This document shows positions 6,015 through 60,018 of a DNA stretch of 64,000 nt, in pieces. The stretch lies in sequence record MG655269.1. One strand, written 5' to 3'. The position numbers and the translations under genes were made by a program. A model generated the notes under the pieces. It did no database searches, was not told the origin of the DNA, and saw only the letters and a program-made list of their open reading frames with translations. Every line of letters starts with the position of its first letter. The stretch's first letter is position 1.

Positions 6015-6016
6015 AT

Positions 6017-6056
6017 CGGCATAAGAGGAGAGGCAAATGCCTCTCCTCTGTTATGC
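6017..6056. terminator. Bidirectional hairpin flanked by CGGCATA and GTTATGC
   Basis: Perfect 11-bp stem AGAGGAGAGGC/GCCTCTCCTCT between convergent genes; T10 run follows at 6063-6072. Confidence 0.8.
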
Positions 6057-6075
6057 TACTTCTTTTTTTTTTGGT

Positions 6076-18173: not shown

Positions 18174-18202
18174 GCGCTCCGCCCTTAGTTTGAAAAATCA
18201 AT

Positions 18203-18208
18203 CATATG
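18203..18208. promoter_or_regulatory. Candidate bidirectional late promoter core (CATATG = TATG on both strands)
   Basis: Lies in the 85-bp AT-rich gap between divergent structural genes; phiKZ-type late promoters use TATG at the start site. Confidence 0.35.
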
Positions 18209-18258
18209 TGCTCGTTACTTAAACATACCTAAGCTATAAAATTACTTTGGAGACCGAC

Positions 18259-20497: not shown

Positions 20498-20530
20498 GGG
20501 TGAGTGGGTGATCCCCTCACCCACTTCCCT
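20497..20530 (+). promoter_or_regulatory. Hairpin with two mutually exclusive pairings, followed by CTATGACC
   Basis: AGTGGGTGA/TCACCCACT or GGGTGAG/CTCACCC. Confidence 0.45.
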
Positions 20531-20550
20531 ATGACCCAGGAGAGGTTTCG

Positions 20551-27546: not shown

Positions 27547-27597
27547 ATCGGCATAGAGGGAGAGGTGTTAACCTCTCCCTCGTGCTTTATGCCGATT
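27546..27597. terminator. Bidirectional hairpin with perfect AATCGGCATA/TATGCCGATT flanks
   Basis: 11-bp stem GAGGGAGAGGT/ACCTCTCCCTC between the convergent fibre and spike genes. Confidence 0.85.
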
Positions 27598-28534: not shown

Positions 28535-28607
28535 AGCTAACCCTAATGTTATTTTTTACGTAACCCGACCATTCTATAAACCAGATCGAATTAATAGGAA
28601 TCGATAA

Positions 28608-44455: not shown

Positions 44456-44978
44456 ATGAAAGGTACGTTGGTTGAGCATCTTGCCAGTCGTGGCTATGAT
44501 GTTGCACGGTATAAAACGCAGTGGCTGACAGACACCCAGTTGACTGTTCCATTGTTCGACTTCGATCACAAACTCAAAGGGTATCAGGTTTATACACCTG
44601 ATGCACCTAAGCATGCCGCTAACCCAAAAGAAGCACGTTACTTTACACGTGGTCTAGGTAAGCAGTTGGTGTGGGGTCTGGAGTTGGAAATTAGTATTAA
44701 CAACCAACAGATTACCAACCGTATTCTTAACTGAATCGGTTTTCAAGGCCTGTGCACTACATCGCTTAGGATTGAACGCCTGGTCTGTTTTAGGTTCTAC
44801 GGTATCTGACCCACTCTATCACCAGCTTCGCTTATTACCTGTTGACTTAGTTTGTTGCGGGGATGATGACAAAGCAGGGAAAGTATTCTCAGAAACCTTT
44901 GGTCGAGGTTTTGTGTCGCACGATCTGGATGAATTATCCCCGAAAGAATTACTCTACTTAACTGCACCGTTTTTATAA
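44456..44978 (+). pseudogene. Small Toprim/primase-like gene split by a +1 frameshift (or sequencing error)
   Basis: ORF from ATG 44456 (AAGGA RBS) reads ...LVWGLELE. The +1 frame, open 44658-44978, continues LVLTTNRLPTVFLTESVFKA...CCGDDDKAG (Toprim E and DxD motifs). Confidence 0.75.
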
Positions 44979-44989
44979 AGGTAGTTATC

Positions 44990-52789: not shown

Positions 52790-52806
52790 CCTATTAGGAG
52801 CTGTTT

Positions 52807-53397
52807 ATGGAGAGGATAACATTAGCTTGGCTAAGAGCTAATCAAGGAAGGAAATCTCTGGAAGATCGTTTGTTTCAATTCGGTCACGTTTATAGTGAGA
52901 GAGATTCCTGTTTCACCTGGCGTGGGATGGTGGATAATTACGGCTACGGAAAGATAAAGGTTAAAAGTAGATTGGTGGGTGCACACAAACTGTCTTATCT
53001 GCTATTCAAAGGGGATATTCCAGAAGGTATGGTAGTTAGACACACGTGCGATAACCCAGTCTGTATTAACCCCTCTCATTTAATCGCGGGTACGGTAAAG
53101 CAAAACGTTCATGATGCAATAGCAAAAGGCCGTGCTTCTTTTCAGAATGTTATCAATTCATCGGTATGTAAGTTTCTGCCGGCCAACGCTATTATTATGG
53201 TAGATAGAAAGATAGGCCCACTACTATGTTATGCAACAACCCGGCGATTAGCCCTTGCTGATAATTCTAAAGTTTACTGGGGTCGTCCGTGTAGGTCACA
53301 CGGCATGCCTTGGAGAAGAACCAGTAATGGCGAATGTGTCTATTGCAGACACGAATACCGAGCAGGTGTGAAGTATACACCTAATGGAAAGAGGTGA
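52807..53397 (+). mobile_element. Free-standing HNH homing endonuclease with a C-terminal Cys/His zinc-finger
   Basis: VVRHTCDNPVCINPSHL...QNVHD (HNH); CRSHG...CVYC; AGA/AGG/ATA-rich codons unlike its neighbours. Confidence 0.85.
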
Positions 53398-53410
53398 TCC
53401 CTTTATCTTC

Positions 53411-53491
53411 CGCGGGTGAGGGTTAGAACCCGGCTGTGGCCGCATAGCCAAAGTCGGTTAATCAAAGTCGACGGATTTGGATTACCCGGCG
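53411..53491 (+). ncRNA. Unassigned structured RNA (closing stem + three hairpins)
   Basis: CGGGTGA/TTACCCG; GGGT-TAGA-ACCC; GGCTGTG-GCCG-CATAGCC; GTCGGTT/AGTCGAC. The G-U pairs work only on +. Confidence 0.5.
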
Positions 53492-53550
53492 TGACTTGTC
53501 ATTGTTTCACTTTGTTCTACTACACAAACAGCTCAACTCTCTCATAATTC

Positions 53551-53581
53551 AAGGGGTGGGGTAACTCACCCCTTTATGCCG
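53551..53581 (+). terminator. Hairpin (GTAA) + TATGCCG element
   Basis: AAGGGGTGGG-GTAA-CTCACCCCTT then TATGCCG. Confidence 0.8.
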
Positions 53582-53596
53582 CAAGGATCTATTATC

Positions 53597-53929
53597 ATGC
53601 AGGAATTCTTCAAAAGCTACGGCACGTACTTCTTTGATGTACTCATGTTTATCATGGTGTTCGCCTGGTGTTTCTGTGGCAGTGGCGGTACACGTCATGA
53701 CAAAAACAAATGGTTGCGTTACGGCGCACCTGTTGCACTTGGTCTTTTTGTTGTGCTGGTCGTCCACGGGTTTGGTGCATTTGATCGTTATCTGGAAAGG
53801 AATAAGTGCGCTGACTTACCAATAGGTATCGGCGTAATGATTGAAGACCGCTGCTACAAGCGCGTTGATGGACCCGTGTACATATCCGCCGACAGTACCG
53901 TGTACAAGGAGAGCAATGTACATGACTGA
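53597..53929 (+). CDS. Small membrane protein (2 TM + Cys pair)
   Basis: Start refined (AAGGA RBS). Confidence 0.7.
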   Translation: MQEFFKSYGTYFFDVLMFIMVFAWCFCGSGGTRHDKNKWLRYGAPVALGLFVVLVVHGFGAFDRYLERNKCADLPIGIGVMIEDRCYKRVDGPVYISADSTVYKESNVHD

Positions 53930-54226: not shown

Positions 54227-54778
54227 ATGGAAAAGATTACGAGTGATACGATCCTTGCTAAGTTACGTGAGGTGGCAGAAACAAACAAAGAAAACCAACA
54301 TCGGAAACTCCGCTCAATAAGCCAAACCATGGCGTACAACATTGAAGCGATCGTCGAGTTGATTGCCTTATCCGGTGAGATGCACCTTGATCTGCTTGAT
54401 CGATACAAAGTTGACACGCTCATAGAGCCGCATTACAAAGGCAATCAACGGGCTTATAGTCGACTGAGTCATACCGCCTCTATTCACACGGGTATGGAGT
54501 ACCTTGCCGGCAACGCGCACATCTACACCAACAACGAGGGTAAAGAAGCAGTACGAATCGTCTGTACCTTTAAGTTTAAACGCGACTTCCTGCAACCTAG
54601 CTTATTACCTAAGGTGCTTCACTACTGTCTGCAGGAACTTAAGCCGCAACTTGATGACAGTGGTGTTGTCCACTTCCACACACGGGGCGAGCTGGAACAC
54701 CCTCATCTTAAAGCCATTCCGGGCTGGCACGTCGACGCTAACGTCCGTGATAACTCCATTGTCATTAGTTTACGTTAA
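54227..54778 (+). CDS. Hypothetical protein
   Basis: 183 aa, GGAG RBS. Confidence 0.75.
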   Translation: MEKITSDTILAKLREVAETNKENQHRKLRSISQTMAYNIEAIVELIALSGEMHLDLLDRYKVDTLIEPHYKGNQRAYSRLSHTASIHTGMEYLAGNAHIYTNNEGKEAVRIVCTFKFKRDFLQPSLLPKVLHYCLQELKPQLDDSGVVHFHTRGELEHPHLKAIPGWHVDANVRDNSIVISLR

Positions 54779-54788
54779 GGAACCAAAC

Positions 54789-55499
54789 ATGATCGTTGTT
54801 GTTGTTGATACTGAATCGACTGCTTTGGATGAACTCGCGGGTATTCTGAGTTTGTCCGCTATTCGCACTAACGTGGCTGACATGAGTTGCATCAAGCACC
54901 TGATCGGTGTGCACCAAGCCGGCAAGACGCATGACGACATCTTCCATGCCGTATTGAACCTCAATGAACAATACGTGATGGGTCGTACCTTCTTGCAAAG
55001 CACGCAGGATTGGTGGATGAAGAAAACCACCCCGGCGGCAAAGGCATCAGTAACCGGACCAACGCAGTCTGCAAAAGATGCTTTGACAGCATTTGTGGTT
55101 TTCATCGAAAAGGCCATTGAGGCGACGATTAACGAACGCGGGGAGAAAGCGAAGGTCCAGCTGTACTACCGTGGCGACTTCGATGCTAAAGCCATTGCGT
55201 CCCTGGCAAAAGCGGTGGGTGTTGAACTCCCGTATATTTTCAATCAGAACAAAGAGATCCGCACATATATCGATGCCAAGCTGGACACGGATATCGGTTA
55301 TATCCCGTGGCTCGGTTACCCAGAAGGACTGGGGCGTCATAGCTCACTCGATGATGTTCTAATCGATGGCTTCGAGATGGCGGTGGCCTATCGCATCAAT
55401 CACCTCGAAAAGTTCGATAAAAAGTCGGTGCCGGGCGAGATCGCCAAACTGAAAGAAACGTACCCTGTTCCGGAGAAAACCCATGCAAAATCTAAATGA
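54789..55499 (+). CDS. DEDDh 3'-5' exonuclease (DnaQ/DexA-like)
   Basis: VVDTEST (ExoI), RGDFD (ExoII), HSSLDD (ExoIII); start refined (AAGGA RBS). Confidence 0.8.
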   Translation: MIVVVVDTESTALDELAGILSLSAIRTNVADMSCIKHLIGVHQAGKTHDDIFHAVLNLNEQYVMGRTFLQSTQDWWMKKTTPAAKASVTGPTQSAKDALTAFVVFIEKAIEATINERGEKAKVQLYYRGDFDAKAIASLAKAVGVELPYIFNQNKEIRTYIDAKLDTDIGYIPWLGYPEGLGRHSSLDDVLIDGFEMAVAYRINHLEKFDKKSVPGEIAKLKETYPVPEKTHAKSK

Positions 55500-56205
55500 C
55501 CGTATCTTTGCCAATTATGATGGTTACATTGAAGCTATTGATGCGCATTTTAAACCTACCTATCAACTGCAGCTGGCTGAGCAAGTCATCCCGGGTGAGC
55601 AGATGGATAAGCTTGTAACCTGGATGGACCACAACGCCCATGTCAAGGGTGCAACCGTCTACCTGATGGAGTTGGTGCCTGATCTCGATAAACCGCATCC
55701 TGCACAATCAGAGATGCGTGTGTTTATTGCACTCGGTATGTTTAATCGTGAAGTCAACCCTGATTTGCCTTACTGGTGTCATGTACATCGCCATTACCCG
55801 GTTAACCTCGCTGTCGACTTGATTGTTACTGACCTGCAAGGCGTTCCTGTAACCCATGCCGTTCTGACTGCGTTTAAGTCATTTGATCGAGCACGCACCT
55901 ACAGGGATAATCTCGGCGGCAAAGGTGGGCATCAACCGCATCACGAAATCCATACTGGCATTATTGACCAAAGTGGTAAGGTGATCTTCGAAGCCTACGG
56001 GAATATCAACTGGCATACCAAGAATGCCATTCGCCTGCTGGCTGAACGACAGATTTTGCAGGAAGATACCGAGTTGTCAGCGGTGTGGTTACTGGCGGGT
56101 TTAAAAGCAGGTGTTAACTGGAAAGTCGAAGACCATGTTGACATCATGAAAGCAATCGATACTTTCCGTCCGAGGAATACCCATGATTTTAACGGCTATG
56201 TTTAA
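55483..56205 (+). CDS. Hypothetical protein
   Basis: 240 aa, GGAG RBS. Confidence 0.75.
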   Translation: MQNLNDRIFANYDGYIEAIDAHFKPTYQLQLAEQVIPGEQMDKLVTWMDHNAHVKGATVYLMELVPDLDKPHPAQSEMRVFIALGMFNREVNPDLPYWCHVHRHYPVNLAVDLIVTDLQGVPVTHAVLTAFKSFDRARTYRDNLGGKGGHQPHHEIHTGIIDQSGKVIFEAYGNINWHTKNAIRLLAERQILQEDTELSAVWLLAGLKAGVNWKVEDHVDIMKAIDTFRPRNTHDFNGYV

Positions 56206-56947
56206 GAAGTGCTTTGGTGCGTCGTCTGTCTATAAAGAAGATGACGGCAGTACACGCATTACCGCTGACCAGTATGAACTTACGCTGGGTCGATCCTACC
56301 ATCCTAAGCTCAAGCGTAAGGTGGGTCGGGGATTTGGCTTCTATGTCGAAAATGGCGAGAAGCTCGAGTTCGTCTTGCGGGGTTACTGGTTTGTGTTGAT
56401 CGCCTGGAGCAAGAAGCGCAAATCACTCAATTGGGACGAAGCGGAAAATGCACCGACCTACGGCTTCAATGTTGTCGACTCTGACTTAGCGATCTATCTC
56501 GGCAACGAATCCGCTAAGTCAGACAAACACATCAGCATGCGTAGTCGCAGCAAATACATCCCCCTGCCCTGGGCCTGGGTCTTCCATAAGCGTGAAGTGT
56601 TAACCACCCGTGACACCTGGGCTGATGTCAAAGAAGGTGCGCTGTCTCAGGGGTGGTCGTTCCCCGCCACATACGTCACCAAGCACAATGAAGTGCAAGA
56701 GATGATGATCGAAGCAACGATGGAGCGCATGACCTGGCGCCTGGCATGGCTCCCTTGGTTCGCACCGGTTACCAAGAAAGACCGCTCGGCAAGTTACAAA
56801 TACCACGGGAACGGTGGTAACGGGGTTGGTCACGATGCCAGTGGGTGGAAAGGCGGGGTCATCGGTGGTGGGGTCATCATGCGGGATAATGAGCACAACC
56901 CGAAAGAAACATTCGACCGTTTAATTAAAGAGCAGCATTACGGCTAA
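56183..56947 (+). CDS. Hypothetical phage protein (SGWKGG motif)
   Basis: 254 aa; the start could also be 56198. Confidence 0.7.
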   Translation: MILTAMFKKCFGASSVYKEDDGSTRITADQYELTLGRSYHPKLKRKVGRGFGFYVENGEKLEFVLRGYWFVLIAWSKKRKSLNWDEAENAPTYGFNVVDSDLAIYLGNESAKSDKHISMRSRSKYIPLPWAWVFHKREVLTTRDTWADVKEGALSQGWSFPATYVTKHNEVQEMMIEATMERMTWRLAWLPWFAPVTKKDRSASYKYHGNGGNGVGHDASGWKGGVIGGGVIMRDNEHNPKETFDRLIKEQHYG

Positions 56948-56959
56948 GAAGGAAAGCAC

Positions 56960-58111
56960 ATGCGTCAGTATTTGGATGGGATTCGTTACATCTTTGAGAA
57001 CGGGTCACAACGAGGGGATCGCACCGGGGTAGGTACGTTGTCGGTGTTCTCGATGAAGCAGACTTACGATCTGCGTCTGGGATTCCCACTGGTCACCAGT
57101 AAGAAAGTGCGTATCGATTTTATTATCGAAGAGCTCATCTCCTTCCTGTCGGGTAACCCTGATATGCCGGGGGTGGGTATCTGGGATGATTGGCGTGTCA
57201 AAGACGAAGTCTCTCGTGAAGTCCCGTTAGAGAACCACGAGCGTTTAAAACTCTGGGTTGAGAAGTCGGACCTGAAGTATAACGTTGCTTACCTTCAACT
57301 CAATGCGATGGGTTCTGTCGAAGAGGGCCATCGTTTCCTGGATGAGCAAGGGATTCCACGTAACAGAAAAGAAGTACTGGTAGCAGAAGGTGCACTCAAT
57401 GCACCCTATGGACCAGCGTGGCGTGCGTGGAAAGGTCGTCTGGGCGAAGTGCATGATCAGATCGGTTATCTGCTCAAGTTGCTTAAAAACAATCCTACGA
57501 GTCGTCGTATGCTATTGTCTGCCTGGGACCCAGCGAACATGCCGGATGAGTCTATCAGTCCGCAGGATAACATCATTGATGGCAAACCATGTCTGACTCC
57601 GTGTCACTGGGCGTTTGAGCTGTACACTGACGAAATCCTGGCAGAGGAACGCCTTGATTGGGTCGAAGCTAATGCACCTAGCCTCTGGGAAGACTACAAT
57701 GATCGTTCAGGACGTGGTCAGTGGTTAGGCGACACAGACAGTAAGCGCCTTCATGAATTCCTGGACGAAGCCGGCGTACCGAAGTATTACCTGGATCTGA
57801 AGTATCACCAACGTTCCTGTGACTATATGGTTGGCGTGCCGTATAACATCGCCAGCTATGCGGTGTTGCAGCACATGTTCGCCGCCACCTGTAACATGAT
57901 CCCGCGGATACTGGAAGCGGATATGACTAACATCCATATCTACAACTTCCACAAAACCAATGCGGTCATGCAGGCCAGTCGCAGCCCACGCGCACTACCC
58001 ACTCTGAAGGTACTCGCCGCTCACGATAAGTTGGAAGACTATACGTTGGAAGACTTTGAACTCGAAGGTTATGATCCGCATCCTTTTATTAAATATGAAA
58101 GAGCGGTCTGA
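56960..58111 (+). CDS. thyA: Thymidylate synthase with two insertions
   Basis: DRTGVGT, SRRMLLSAWDP, LTPCH (catalytic Cys), QRSCD...GVPYNIASY, HIY. Confidence 0.95.
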   Translation: MRQYLDGIRYIFENGSQRGDRTGVGTLSVFSMKQTYDLRLGFPLVTSKKVRIDFIIEELISFLSGNPDMPGVGIWDDWRVKDEVSREVPLENHERLKLWVEKSDLKYNVAYLQLNAMGSVEEGHRFLDEQGIPRNRKEVLVAEGALNAPYGPAWRAWKGRLGEVHDQIGYLLKLLKNNPTSRRMLLSAWDPANMPDESISPQDNIIDGKPCLTPCHWAFELYTDEILAEERLDWVEANAPSLWEDYNDRSGRGQWLGDTDSKRLHEFLDEAGVPKYYLDLKYHQRSCDYMVGVPYNIASYAVLQHMFAATCNMIPRILEADMTNIHIYNFHKTNAVMQASRSPRALPTLKVLAAHDKLEDYTLEDFELEGYDPHPFIKYERAV

Positions 58112-58143
58112 TCCACTGGTGCGTTGAAGGGAGCACAACGGTA

Positions 58144-58509
58144 ATGAAGAGAGAGTCCAGTTACACCCTGGTCTTTGGGGAAGGTAGTACTGAAGAAGAT
58201 GTCAACACCCTGCGTGAGATGGTGTCACACATGCGGGGGTTGACTGGGTTGTCGCAGCTGGGGGCGTTTGAGGTGTTCGTTACCCATTATGAATTGCAAC
58301 GTAAAGACGCAGGGCTAATCACCAGTAATCTTCCGGTGAATGCACAGTCGTTGTTTGATGTCAGTGATCGACAGAACTGGCTGACACCGCTGTTCACTTC
58401 CCGGGGGTTAGTGGCGTGTGATTTGTTGTTGTTACTGAAGCAAGGCAAATGGACCGGAGAACACCTCAAGGTGACCTTTCGGGTAAAAGGCATCAGGGCG
58501 AAAGCATAA
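58144..58509 (+). CDS. Hypothetical protein
   Basis: 121 aa, GGGAG RBS. Confidence 0.7.
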   Translation: MKRESSYTLVFGEGSTEEDVNTLREMVSHMRGLTGLSQLGAFEVFVTHYELQRKDAGLITSNLPVNAQSLFDVSDRQNWLTPLFTSRGLVACDLLLLLKQGKWTGEHLKVTFRVKGIRAKA

Positions 58510-58515
58510 CGCATA

Positions 58516-58543
58516 CGGAGGGGTCATTCCCTCCGCTATGCCG
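58516..58543 (+). terminator. Hairpin + TATGCCG element (GCATA on the left flank)
   Basis: CGGAGGG-GTCATT-CCCTCCG then CTATGCCG. Confidence 0.75.
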
Positions 58544-58582
58544 ATTAAGTTTTTAACAAAGTTTACTGCAGATCTTTTCAGA

Positions 58583-58592
58583 CCTATATCAC
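58583..58592 (+). promoter_or_regulatory. Candidate early promoter core CCTATATCAC
   Basis: Variant of CCTACATTAC with the same TCAGA 5' flank as the 40045 copy. Confidence 0.4.
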
Positions 58593-58641
58593 GTCGGTGA
58601 ATAACCTTTCACTAATTAACCAATCCGTAAGGAGTTTTATC

Positions 58642-60018
58642 ATGGCTGCATTAAAATCTAAAGTTGAACTGTTTCACTGGTATCAGGAACTGAAAACTGA
58701 ATTTAAAACCGGCAAGATTACCGTGTTCGAATTTGAGCGGCAGGTGCTCAGCGAAATCCTTTCCCTGACCGATACTGGTAAAACACCATCTACTGCCAAA
58801 ATCAGTCTGGTAGTGGACATCCTTAATTCTGTGGTTTTTGATCATGTGTTTACCGCAGACGGTATCATTGACCTGGACAACATGCTCGCTCGTGAACCCG
58901 TACGCAACATTTCGGAATTGACGGCGGCACGCAATAACTTTATTACCATACAAGCCCAGGCCCGTCTGAACAAAGAAAAGGAACAGACTGCGAAACCAGC
59001 AGAGCAGAAGGCATTTGCCAAGTTTCCAACGAAAGAAGAGCTCGAATATTGGGTTAATGCCAGAAAGCTATTCCGTTATGGTAACCCCAATACGCTCGGC
59101 ACTGAAGCATACCAGGAGGTTGTCAAATACTGGCATCTGGTCGATAAATATCTGGGTACATTAAAACTGGAACTGGATCACACCGACCCTAACTACGTCG
59201 ATAACATCCTGTTGATTGACTACTTTGTATCGTTGGTCGCCAAGCAAGAGGTTCCTGAGGAAGAACGCAGGCATCTGAAAGACACACTTAGCAGTCTATA
59301 TGCGTGCTCCATTAAAACCCCACACATCGATGCATTTGTCGAACGTGGCCAACACCCCCTTCCAGTTAAGCCAAAACAACCACCCATCGCGCAACAAGCC
59401 ATCGACCGCGCTATTGCCTGGCGTGAAGAGGAAACCAAAACAAACCATCAGCAAAAAGACATATTACGAGAATTCGCCGATCAATACTGTCCGGTAATGG
59501 TGGCCAAGCAACATGCCACTCAGCAGTTGTTTGATTTCGTTGCTCGTGCGGTGAAACGTGTCTTGACCGCCATTGCTCAGCCAAACAACCCGGAAGACGC
59601 CGAGATGCTGGCAAAAGGTCATGCCATCAACATTCTCAATGTTAAGCATGGTGTAATTGGTGTCAGTACCACGATTACCAGAAACGGTCTGGTCAAGTTA
59701 CGCATCTTCGCTGAACGTGAACTATGTAACGAGGACTACGGTATTCCGACTCTGTCGTATAATCAAGTCCGTCAATCACCTCATGCAACGTTCAGCATAC
59801 CAATGCCGGCGCTGATAGATGGGTTCATTAACATGTGGGATATCCCTAATCAGGCCCCTCGCCATATGCATAATAGCGTAGGCGGTATGTTGGGTAATCC
59901 CTATCCGTTACAGCAGCTTGATGGTTTGATGTCAGCTATTGCAAGAGAAGCAGCCGAGTACGGCGTTACGCCTACTTATGGCATGATCGAAGACAGCCTT
60001 ATCGTTGTGCTGCATTAA
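58642..60018 (+). CDS. Hypothetical protein; N-terminal helical module shared with 60082
   Basis: Start refined (AAGGAG RBS); WYQELKTEFKTGKI and YFVSLVAKQEV...IDAFVER blocks. Confidence 0.8.
   Translation: MAALKSKVELFHWYQELKTEFKTGKITVFEFERQVLSEILSLTDTGKTPSTAKISLVVDILNSVVFDHVFTADGIIDLDNMLAREPVRNISELTAARNNFITIQAQARLNKEKEQTAKPAEQKAFAKFPTKEELEYWVNARKLFRYGNPNTLGTEAYQEVVKYWHLVDKYLGTLKLELDHTDPNYVDNILLIDYFVSLVAKQEVPEEERRHLKDTLSSLYACSIKTPHIDAFVERGQHPLPVKPKQPPIAQQAIDRAIAWREEETKTNHQQKDILREFADQYCPVMVAKQHATQQLFDFVARAVKRVLTAIAQPNNPEDAEMLAKGHAINILNVKHGVIGVSTTITRNGLVKLRIFAERELCNEDYGIPTLSYNQVRQSPHATFSIPMPALIDGFINMWDIPNQAPRHMHNSVGGMLGNPYPLQQLDGLMSAIAREAAEYGVTPTYGMIEDSLIVVLH

Follow-up and report, generated by a model that had tools for sequence, protein, structure and literature searches.

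A genuine structured RNA lies on the plus strand of Erwinia phage vB_EamM_MadMel at positions 53411-53491, and its core consists of three tandem hairpins. The HNH gene next to it (gp62) is a later mobile insertion and not the partner of the RNA, because many relatives that lack the gene have the RNA. As a whole, the element is probably best explained as a conserved noncoding RNA of the plus strand that is independent of the HNH gene, exists either free or as a derivative of a 3' UTR, and binds a protein.

The stretch of DNA analysed here, called the window below, comprises 64,000 nucleotides; it is the MadMel sequence (100% identity), and window coordinates equal record coordinates. MadMel is an Agricanvirus, a nucleus-forming jumbo phage with RAY as a close relative. 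Agricanvirus phages are used in fire-blight biocontrol, and RAY is a model for the phage nucleus. To our knowledge, very few structured noncoding RNAs are known from jumbo phages, and none from Agricanvirus. RAY itself is described as a characterised nucleus-forming (chimalliviral) jumbo phage (10.1101/2023.02.24.529968).

The RNA core is a conserved three-hairpin fold

The initial annotation of this DNA had proposed a structured RNA on the plus strand, 13 nt past the HNH stop codon, and both its folding energy and its covariation bear this out. On the plus strand the 81 nt of positions 53411-53491 reach -33.2 kcal/mol (z = -2.94) and are predicted from the single sequence to form three tandem hairpins; the minus strand is unremarkable (z = -0.95). 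The hairpins of the core are listed here together with a tentative one on its 5' side.

53391-53409, plus strand: tentative hairpin P0, read by eye, GAGGU (53391-53395) with AUCUU (53405-53409)
53413-53432, plus strand: hairpin H1, 5-bp stem (53413-53417 with 53428-53432) and 10-nt loop RAGGGUUAGA, in which AGGGUUAGA is invariant
53437-53450, plus strand: hairpin H2, 5-bp stem (53437-53441 with 53446-53450) and 4-nt loop GCAY
53453-53490, plus strand: hairpin H3, a long interrupted hairpin of 15-16 pairs (53453-53463 with 53480-53490 and 53466-53469 with 53474-53477)

Compensatory changes between lineages support this fold. In an alignment of six sequences 97.3% of the cells pair and 13 of 25 pairs have changed on both sides; with all ten sequences, which represent about four or five clades, 94.8% of the cells pair and again 13 of 25 pairs are compensatory. 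Neither result was reached by any of 500 shuffles, and only 23-46% of cells paired when the partners were slid by 1-3 columns, both controls being unaware of phylogeny. RNAalifold, applied to four and later to ten MAFFT-aligned homologues, returned the same three hairpins with no model fitting. The homologue search with a covariation check that had been proposed for this RNA was positive, as judged by pair counts and shuffles. With ten sequences, a fold supported by covariation and invariant loops, the element constitutes an RNA family that is ready for testing.

Each hairpin contributes to this result. The H1 stem is paired in 100% of cells, with pair 53417/53428 being U-A in six homologues and G-C in four, and its loop AGGGUUAGA is invariant in all ten. 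Compensatory changes are found at four of the five pairs of H2 and at 8 of 15 pairs of H3, in which 94% of cells are paired across the ten homologues. Position 53454 forms a U·G pair with 53489 in ten of ten homologues, and several other pairs of the fold go through G·U between lineages. This invariant pair and the passages through G·U fix the plus strand as the RNA, in keeping with an earlier remark that some of the G·U pairs work only on that strand.

The architecture first proposed for this RNA differed in part. It was a four-way junction of a closing stem and three hairpins, of which only the portion overlapping H3 covaries; in six homologues the closing stem was 78% paired and the registers of hairpins 1 and 2 were 83% paired, with no compensatory change. 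A long hairpin that had been described as an alternative, opening the closing stem, is essentially H3, the best-supported helix, and so belongs to the conserved fold instead of competing with it. The minus strand had also been likened to a tRNA. ARAGORN found no tRNA or tmRNA genes in the whole window, and minus-strand matches of the covariance model reached only 10-14 bits. We therefore rejected a tRNA, a tmRNA and a tRNA-like decoy, the weak folding of the minus strand (z as above) and the covarying H1 stem, which takes up C residues that a T-arm would need, being further points against them.

On the 5' side of the core, P0 was seen by eye, falls outside the pair-count scoring and is tentative. 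One of its pairs is G-C, G-U or A-U depending on the lineage, and RNAalifold predicts the helix in the distant group. Its GAGGU strand is Shine-Dalgarno-like and overlaps the HNH stop codon.

The RNA family is limited to a few jumbo phage lineages

Ten distinct homologues were found, in Agricanvirus species, four assembled run contigs, pEa_SNUABM_37, SA002 and two metagenome or viral contigs, and six of the ten had no part in building the covariance model that found them. Erwinia phage pEa_SNUABM_37/48 and Salmonella phage SA002, whose exonuclease is only ~30% identical to that of MadMel, carry a recognisable homologous element in the syntenic gap. A degenerate pattern search led to two giant-phage contigs, L030 (JGI, 282 kb) and L031 (IMG/VR, 273 kb), and gp67 homologues led to the Agricanvirus-like contigs L032-L035, each of which has a gap of ~227 nt that contains the element and lacks the HNH gene. 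The element is present as a single copy per genome (275 kb).

Between MadMel and AH06 the intergenic block is 91% identical, with the flanking proteins at 31% and 37%, and the block with the RNA is the best-conserved segment of the window except for a 36-nt inverted match. Conservation alone is nevertheless weaker evidence for an RNA here, because short intergenic regions are generally better conserved than genes between these two phages. Many of them are 92-96% identical, the surrounding genes being at 65-84% (e.g., 18174-18258, 20498-20550 and 28535-28607), and in this phage group proteins appear to change faster than regulatory DNA. Among the homologues, indels break every reading frame and none is conserved; a 43-aa ORF with a GTG start (53416-53547) and a 12-codon ORF of SA002 were rejected on these grounds.

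The family is limited to Agricanvirus and a few sister lineages of nucleus-forming enterobacterial jumbo phages. The covariance model had no match in Proteus phage 10, 2050HW, pEa_SNUABM_54, phiKZ or 201phi2-1, and in the latter two model R2 gave no match at E up to 1. A 16-bit match of model R1 in Serratia phage KpHz_2 lies in a stretch without a stop-bounded ORF of its own, apparently within a longer frame, and was taken as chance. A first pattern scan of JGI metagenomes and two scans of GTDB genome contigs gave no match, and scans of IMG/VR added only RAY and one uncultivated contig. Capture of a host RNA was rejected, with no blastn match in 5,426 E. coli genomes or 72,556 plasmids.

The initial annotation could name no known family for this RNA, and scans against Rfam agree. 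Rfam 15 had no match in the window at the gathering threshold, and at E up to 10 the only match over the element was a 16-bit chance match to CC2171. The homologues in pEa_SNUABM_37, SA002, L030 and L031 had no Rfam 15 match.

The HNH gene inserted at the edge of the RNA region

The HNH gene and the left junction of its insertion are located as follows.

52792-52796, plus strand: TATTA, the remnant of a 20-nt 5' motif (TATTATATAGGTTGTAACTC), at the left junction of the HNH insertion as seen in the alignment with HNH-less relatives
52807-53397, plus strand: gp62, a free-standing HNH homing endonuclease gene of 196 aa (Pfam HNH_3, PHROG), with its stop codon TGA at 53395-53397

The product of gp62 matches PF13392 HNH_3 at E = 1.5e-10, above the curated cut-off, and PHROG families of HNH endonucleases down to E = 1e-36. 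HNH_3 and, weakly, zf-His_Me_endon are its only domains; the domain search found no RuvC, bridge-helix or guide-binding domains.

The presence of the gene varies among near-identical phages. Among Agricanvirus records that are ~99% identical (98-99% in the flanks), ten have the HNH gene and six do not, the latter being Rebecca, Bosolaphorus, RAY and Deimos-Minion, two of which have duplicate records. The more distant AH06 also lacks it. In all of these HNH-less relatives the whole intergenic block with the structure is retained, and the empty allele occurs in plant and dairy metagenome contigs as well. In total, the RNA is found without the HNH gene at the same site in Rebecca, RAY, Bosolaphorus, Deimos-Minion, AH06, four Logan contigs, pEa_SNUABM_37/48, SA002 and two further contigs, which makes at least nine HNH-less lineages. 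Nor is there a gp62 homologue anywhere in the whole genomes of Rebecca, AH06, pEa_SNUABM_37 or SA002.

The junctions of the insertion can be read from the alignments. The sequence of HNH-less genomes is GCCTATTATATAGGTTGTAACTC-AATGGGATGGTGATC; in MadMel, TATTA (52796) is followed by the HNH cassette, after which native sequence starts again at AAAGAGGTGATCC. The final codons of the HNH gene, stop included, are therefore part of the native RNA region. In metagenome contigs, position 52796 is joined to 53401 or 53415 with TATAGGTTGTAACTC... in between. Through the insertion, 15-16 nt were lost from the otherwise invariant 20-nt motif. The right flank in MadMel is the allele of L033/L035-type phages and not that of RAY, and resembles what co-conversion from an L033/L035-type donor would leave. 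Judged from these alignments, gp62 is a free-standing homing endonuclease gene that, in some phages of E. amylovora, landed at the 5' margin of the RNA region. Because viable phages carry an insertion that destroys the invariant motif, either the motif or the RNA is dispensable on laboratory hosts, and the isolates with the HNH gene are natural variants with a disrupted 5' motif.

These observations bear on the suggestion, made when the RNA was first noticed, that it serves the adjacent HNH nuclease as a cofactor, guide or inhibitor. The gene and the RNA lie side by side in the window, and a 9-bp complementarity between the start region of gp62 and the tail of the RNA could repress HNH translation in cis. 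Against this, the co-occurrence check places the RNA in the HNH-less lineages listed above, including four whole genomes with no HNH homologue at all, and the enzyme is of the homing type, lacks RuvC or guide-binding domains and comes and goes among nearly identical phages. We regard such a partnership as extremely improbable. An HNH-domain gene adjoining a structured RNA is the only likeness to IscB or Cas9 with their omega-RNA or tracrRNA. Unlike IscB, TnpB and Cas9 modules, the protein is a 196-aa HNH_3-only enzyme without RuvC, and the RNA mostly occurs without the protein. The MadMel RNA and HNH gene are not an RNA-guided nuclease module. The attractive reading of an RNA-guided or RNA-regulated HNH enzyme is thereby corrected to that of a homing endonuclease targeting the edge of an RNA gene.

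The complementarity itself is perfect and involves the ribosome-binding region of the HNH gene at 52798-52806 (GAGCUGUUU, just before the ATG at 52807) and positions 53526-53534 of the RNA tail (AAACAGCUC); a rough estimate puts its chance occurrence at ~0.006. The same tail site is open to pairing with the native 5' end (GGUUGU) that the insertion deleted. Pairing between the tail and the ribosome-binding region might mask the HNH start in long transcripts. Start masking in long transcripts is known from other homing endonuclease genes.

Free-standing homing endonuclease genes are familiar from large phages, for example the seg and mob genes of T4 and HNH_3 enzymes. Like T4 seg- and mob-type genes, gp62 is intergenic, is present or absent among near-identical genomes, has a flank that resembles co-conversion, and lies beside or within highly conserved sequence. 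It differs from them in that its predicted target is the edge of a noncoding RNA region and not a protein-coding gene.

Boundaries of the RNA unit

Downstream of the core, the following features lead to the next gene.

53491-53552, plus strand: tail with little predicted structure, containing ACAGCU (53528-53533) and a conserved pyrimidine run, UCUCUCAUA
53553-53581, plus strand: terminator-type hairpin GGGGUGGG-GUAA-CUCACCCC (53553-53572), followed by UUUAUGCCG with the box TATGCCG at 53575-53581

Six HNH-less Agricanvirus-like loci have the 20-mer TATTATATAGGTTGTAACTC without variation directly after the upstream stop codon, and each genome contains it once. In distant phages the equivalent 5' sequence is TATTGTATAG... 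or TATTCTATAG..., and in L030 it is TATTGTATG. Because it is unique in the genome, the 20-mer was rejected as a consensus for promoters in general; it may belong to the RNA or be a site on the DNA. Its TATAG core, the only part of it that is enriched, is 12-fold enriched in intergenic DNA. The late promoter of phiKZ is TATG, with the G as position +1 (PMC4666361). A start at TAT(A)G would yield an RNA of ~200 nt in every lineage. A search of RNA runs gave none that contains this DNA, and the one run guessed to be RNA, X20, covered only part of the HNH gene.

A conserved DNA site could also account for part of this pattern, in the form of a replication origin, a protein operator or a homing site. 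The 5' motif is partly palindromic (CCTAT-TAT-ATAGG) as well as unique, and conserved DNA is what a homing endonuclease would target. The core argues for an RNA instead, since its compensatory changes go through G·U, its invariant U·G would be an A·C on the opposite strand, and the minus strand is not stably folded. An element that acts as DNA and not as RNA is accordingly very unlikely. A replication origin in particular was rejected, with no GC-skew feature at the position of the RNA.

A helix that closes the unit between its 5' and 3' ends is predicted in each subfamily, as GGUUGU/ACAGCU, GUAGGU/ACCUAY or UGAGU/ACUCA, although each of these helices, taken singly, is at chance level in shuffles. 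ACAGCU at 53528-53533 is tentatively the 3' strand of such a helix with the 5' end of the RNA.

The 3' boundary is presumed to be the box at 53575-53581. A TATGCCG element had been noted 60 nt downstream of the structure; the element is there, and its distance from 53491 is 84 nt. Similar signals recur throughout the genome. The motif consists of a GC-rich hairpin followed directly by (U)UUAUGCC(G) and is found at about ten intergenic sites of the window, behind genes of either strand. The count of TATGCCG is 21, with 6.7 expected, and TTATGCC is 97-fold enriched in intergenic DNA. The combination of hairpin and TTATGCC is a genome-wide punctuation mark, probably a terminator of the phiKZ type, and downstream of the RNA it is kept in all homologues. 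From these sequence features we infer the 5' and 3' ends as given, for a total of ~200 nt.

Between convergent genes (6015-6075 and 27547-27595), the terminator hairpin has CGGCATA on its left and TATGC(CG) on its right, so that the box is present on both strands. The annotated start of gp63 (ATG 53576) falls within the TATGCCG box; the ATG at 53597, 9 nt after AAGGA (53583-53587), is the likelier start. For the AH06 homologue of gp63, the annotation places the start at a later ATG, past the box.

Neighbouring genes and possible roles of the RNA

The genes that immediately flank the RNA are unrelated between lineages, and the one directly downstream is gp63 in Agricanvirus and a gp67 homologue in distant phages. 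A wider neighbourhood is common to all lineages checked and comprises a DEDD-type exonuclease (PF16473), a gp67-family protein and thymidylate synthase. In MadMel and the four Logan loci it also contains an inhibitor of CBASS of the Acb3 family (PF25187).

Two of these genes carry other labels in the record. The gene gp68 (56183-56947), annotated as hypothetical, matches Acb3 (PF25187) at E = 3e-62 and adjoins thymidylate synthase in all the Agricanvirus-like loci analysed. The gene gp66 (54747-55499), annotated as exodeoxyribonuclease VIII, matches the Rv2179c-like 3'-5' exoribonuclease domain (PF16473) at E = 3e-13, and its substrate may be RNA. The Protein Atlas had no match for gp67, which had been considered as a partner of the RNA.

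The RNA unit would run for ~200 nt from the start-like TAT(A)G motif just past the upstream stop codon to the phiKZ-type terminator, a hairpin plus UUAUGCC, just before the next gene. Transcription could begin at a start of its own, or the RNA could be the structured 3' portion of the upstream operon's transcript. In phages that carry the HNH gene, it would then form the 3' end of the HNH transcript, and an RNA that can be the 3' end of an upstream transcript would explain why the insertion is tolerated. Free or as a processed tail, the RNA would use its invariant loops to bind a protein of the phage or the host. That the loops do not vary while their stems covary suggests that the RNA has a specific partner, either a protein or another RNA.

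In most intergenic regions the terminator hairpin directly follows the stop codon; here ~215 nt of conserved structure separate the two, so that the RNA is a 3' UTR in any case. It might then be nothing but a cis-acting 3'-end element of the upstream mRNA, one that blocks 3'-to-5' exonucleases or is a processing site for RNase III or RNase E and does nothing in trans. Such an element would be compatible with an HNH insertion upstream of it, and H3, as a long interrupted duplex, would suit the processing variant. However, there is only one such structure per 275-kb genome, it is conserved although the upstream genes are unrelated between lineages, and its invariant loops of 9-10 nt exceed what a stabiliser needs. 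We consider a purely cis-acting element rather unlikely.

The downstream genes raise the prospect of a leader, similar to a riboswitch or attenuator, in which the sensing of a ligand or protein controls read-through of the terminator into the cluster of exonuclease, gp67, Acb3 and thymidylate synthase. The order of the parts is as such a leader would have it, with a conserved multi-hairpin domain with invariant loops, a terminator hairpin, a ribosome-binding site and a gene, and the exonuclease, Acb3 (in the Agricanvirus-like loci) and thyA lie downstream in every lineage examined. Yet the gene directly downstream is not the same in Agricanvirus and the distant phages, the terminator is the generic box found genome-wide, the spacer to it varies from 0 to ~20 nt with no conserved anti-terminator pairing found, and no Rfam riboswitch matches. 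Like the ribozyme that was also suggested when the RNA was first noticed, such a switch is a guess, and control of read-through by this RNA is improbable on this evidence.

A protein-binding RNA that acts in trans, with a role in host takeover or counter-defence, is our leading guess, although we hold it with less than even confidence and it is the least secure element of our account. A decoy or regulatory role comes first because the RNA lies in a variable accessory region beside an anti-CBASS gene of the Acb3 family and a DEDD-type exonuclease. As regards the partner, this guess is speculative and draws only on the invariant loops and the neighbouring genes. A more specific proposal seems somewhat doubtful, namely that the RNA represents an undescribed class of noncoding RNA of nucleus-forming jumbo phages which either acts on a host or phage protein or is a ligand-sensing leader for the exonuclease, Acb3 and thymidylate synthase cluster, with the AGGGUUAGA loop as its recognition site. 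A sponge for CsrA was rejected, as the GGA motifs in the loops are not conserved (by eye).

Comparison with known small RNAs

In 201phi2-1 and phiKZ, ONT-cappable-seq delimited sRNA units that run from a phage start site to a nearby terminator, and one sRNA of 201phi2-1, upstream of a tail gene, has counterparts in other genera that keep its predicted fold (PMC11512511). The MadMel RNA resembles these units in being a short noncoding unit of a nucleus-forming jumbo phage, with the difference that its bounds are read from sequence alone. It has no relation to them in sequence or structure (model R2 had no match). Unlike the conserved sRNA, which lies upstream of the tail gene phiKZ gp182/201phi2-1 gp277, it sits in an accessory region.

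CpxQ, SroC and DapZ are sRNAs derived from 3' UTRs that use the terminator of the upstream mRNA and arise from an internal start or by processing; they are Hfq-dependent base-pairing RNAs with short seeds. A terminator shared with the upstream mRNA, as in these sRNAs, would fit the tolerance of an upstream insertion. The MadMel RNA differs from them: its three covarying hairpins, its invariant loops and the shortness of its U tract suggest that it binds a protein.

Other features of the window

A further conserved gap (44735-44989, 255 nt) lies upstream of a gene for an RtcB-like ligase. It is 89.6% identical to AH06 and has no excess folding (z = +0.5), and a 45-codon ORF is annotated in the matching gap of AH06. 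In AH06, the annotated thymidylate synthase is split in two by an HNH homing endonuclease gene (57027-59021; L016 7027-9021), probably an intron plus its endonuclease. The thymidylate synthase gene of MadMel (56960-58111) is a single piece.
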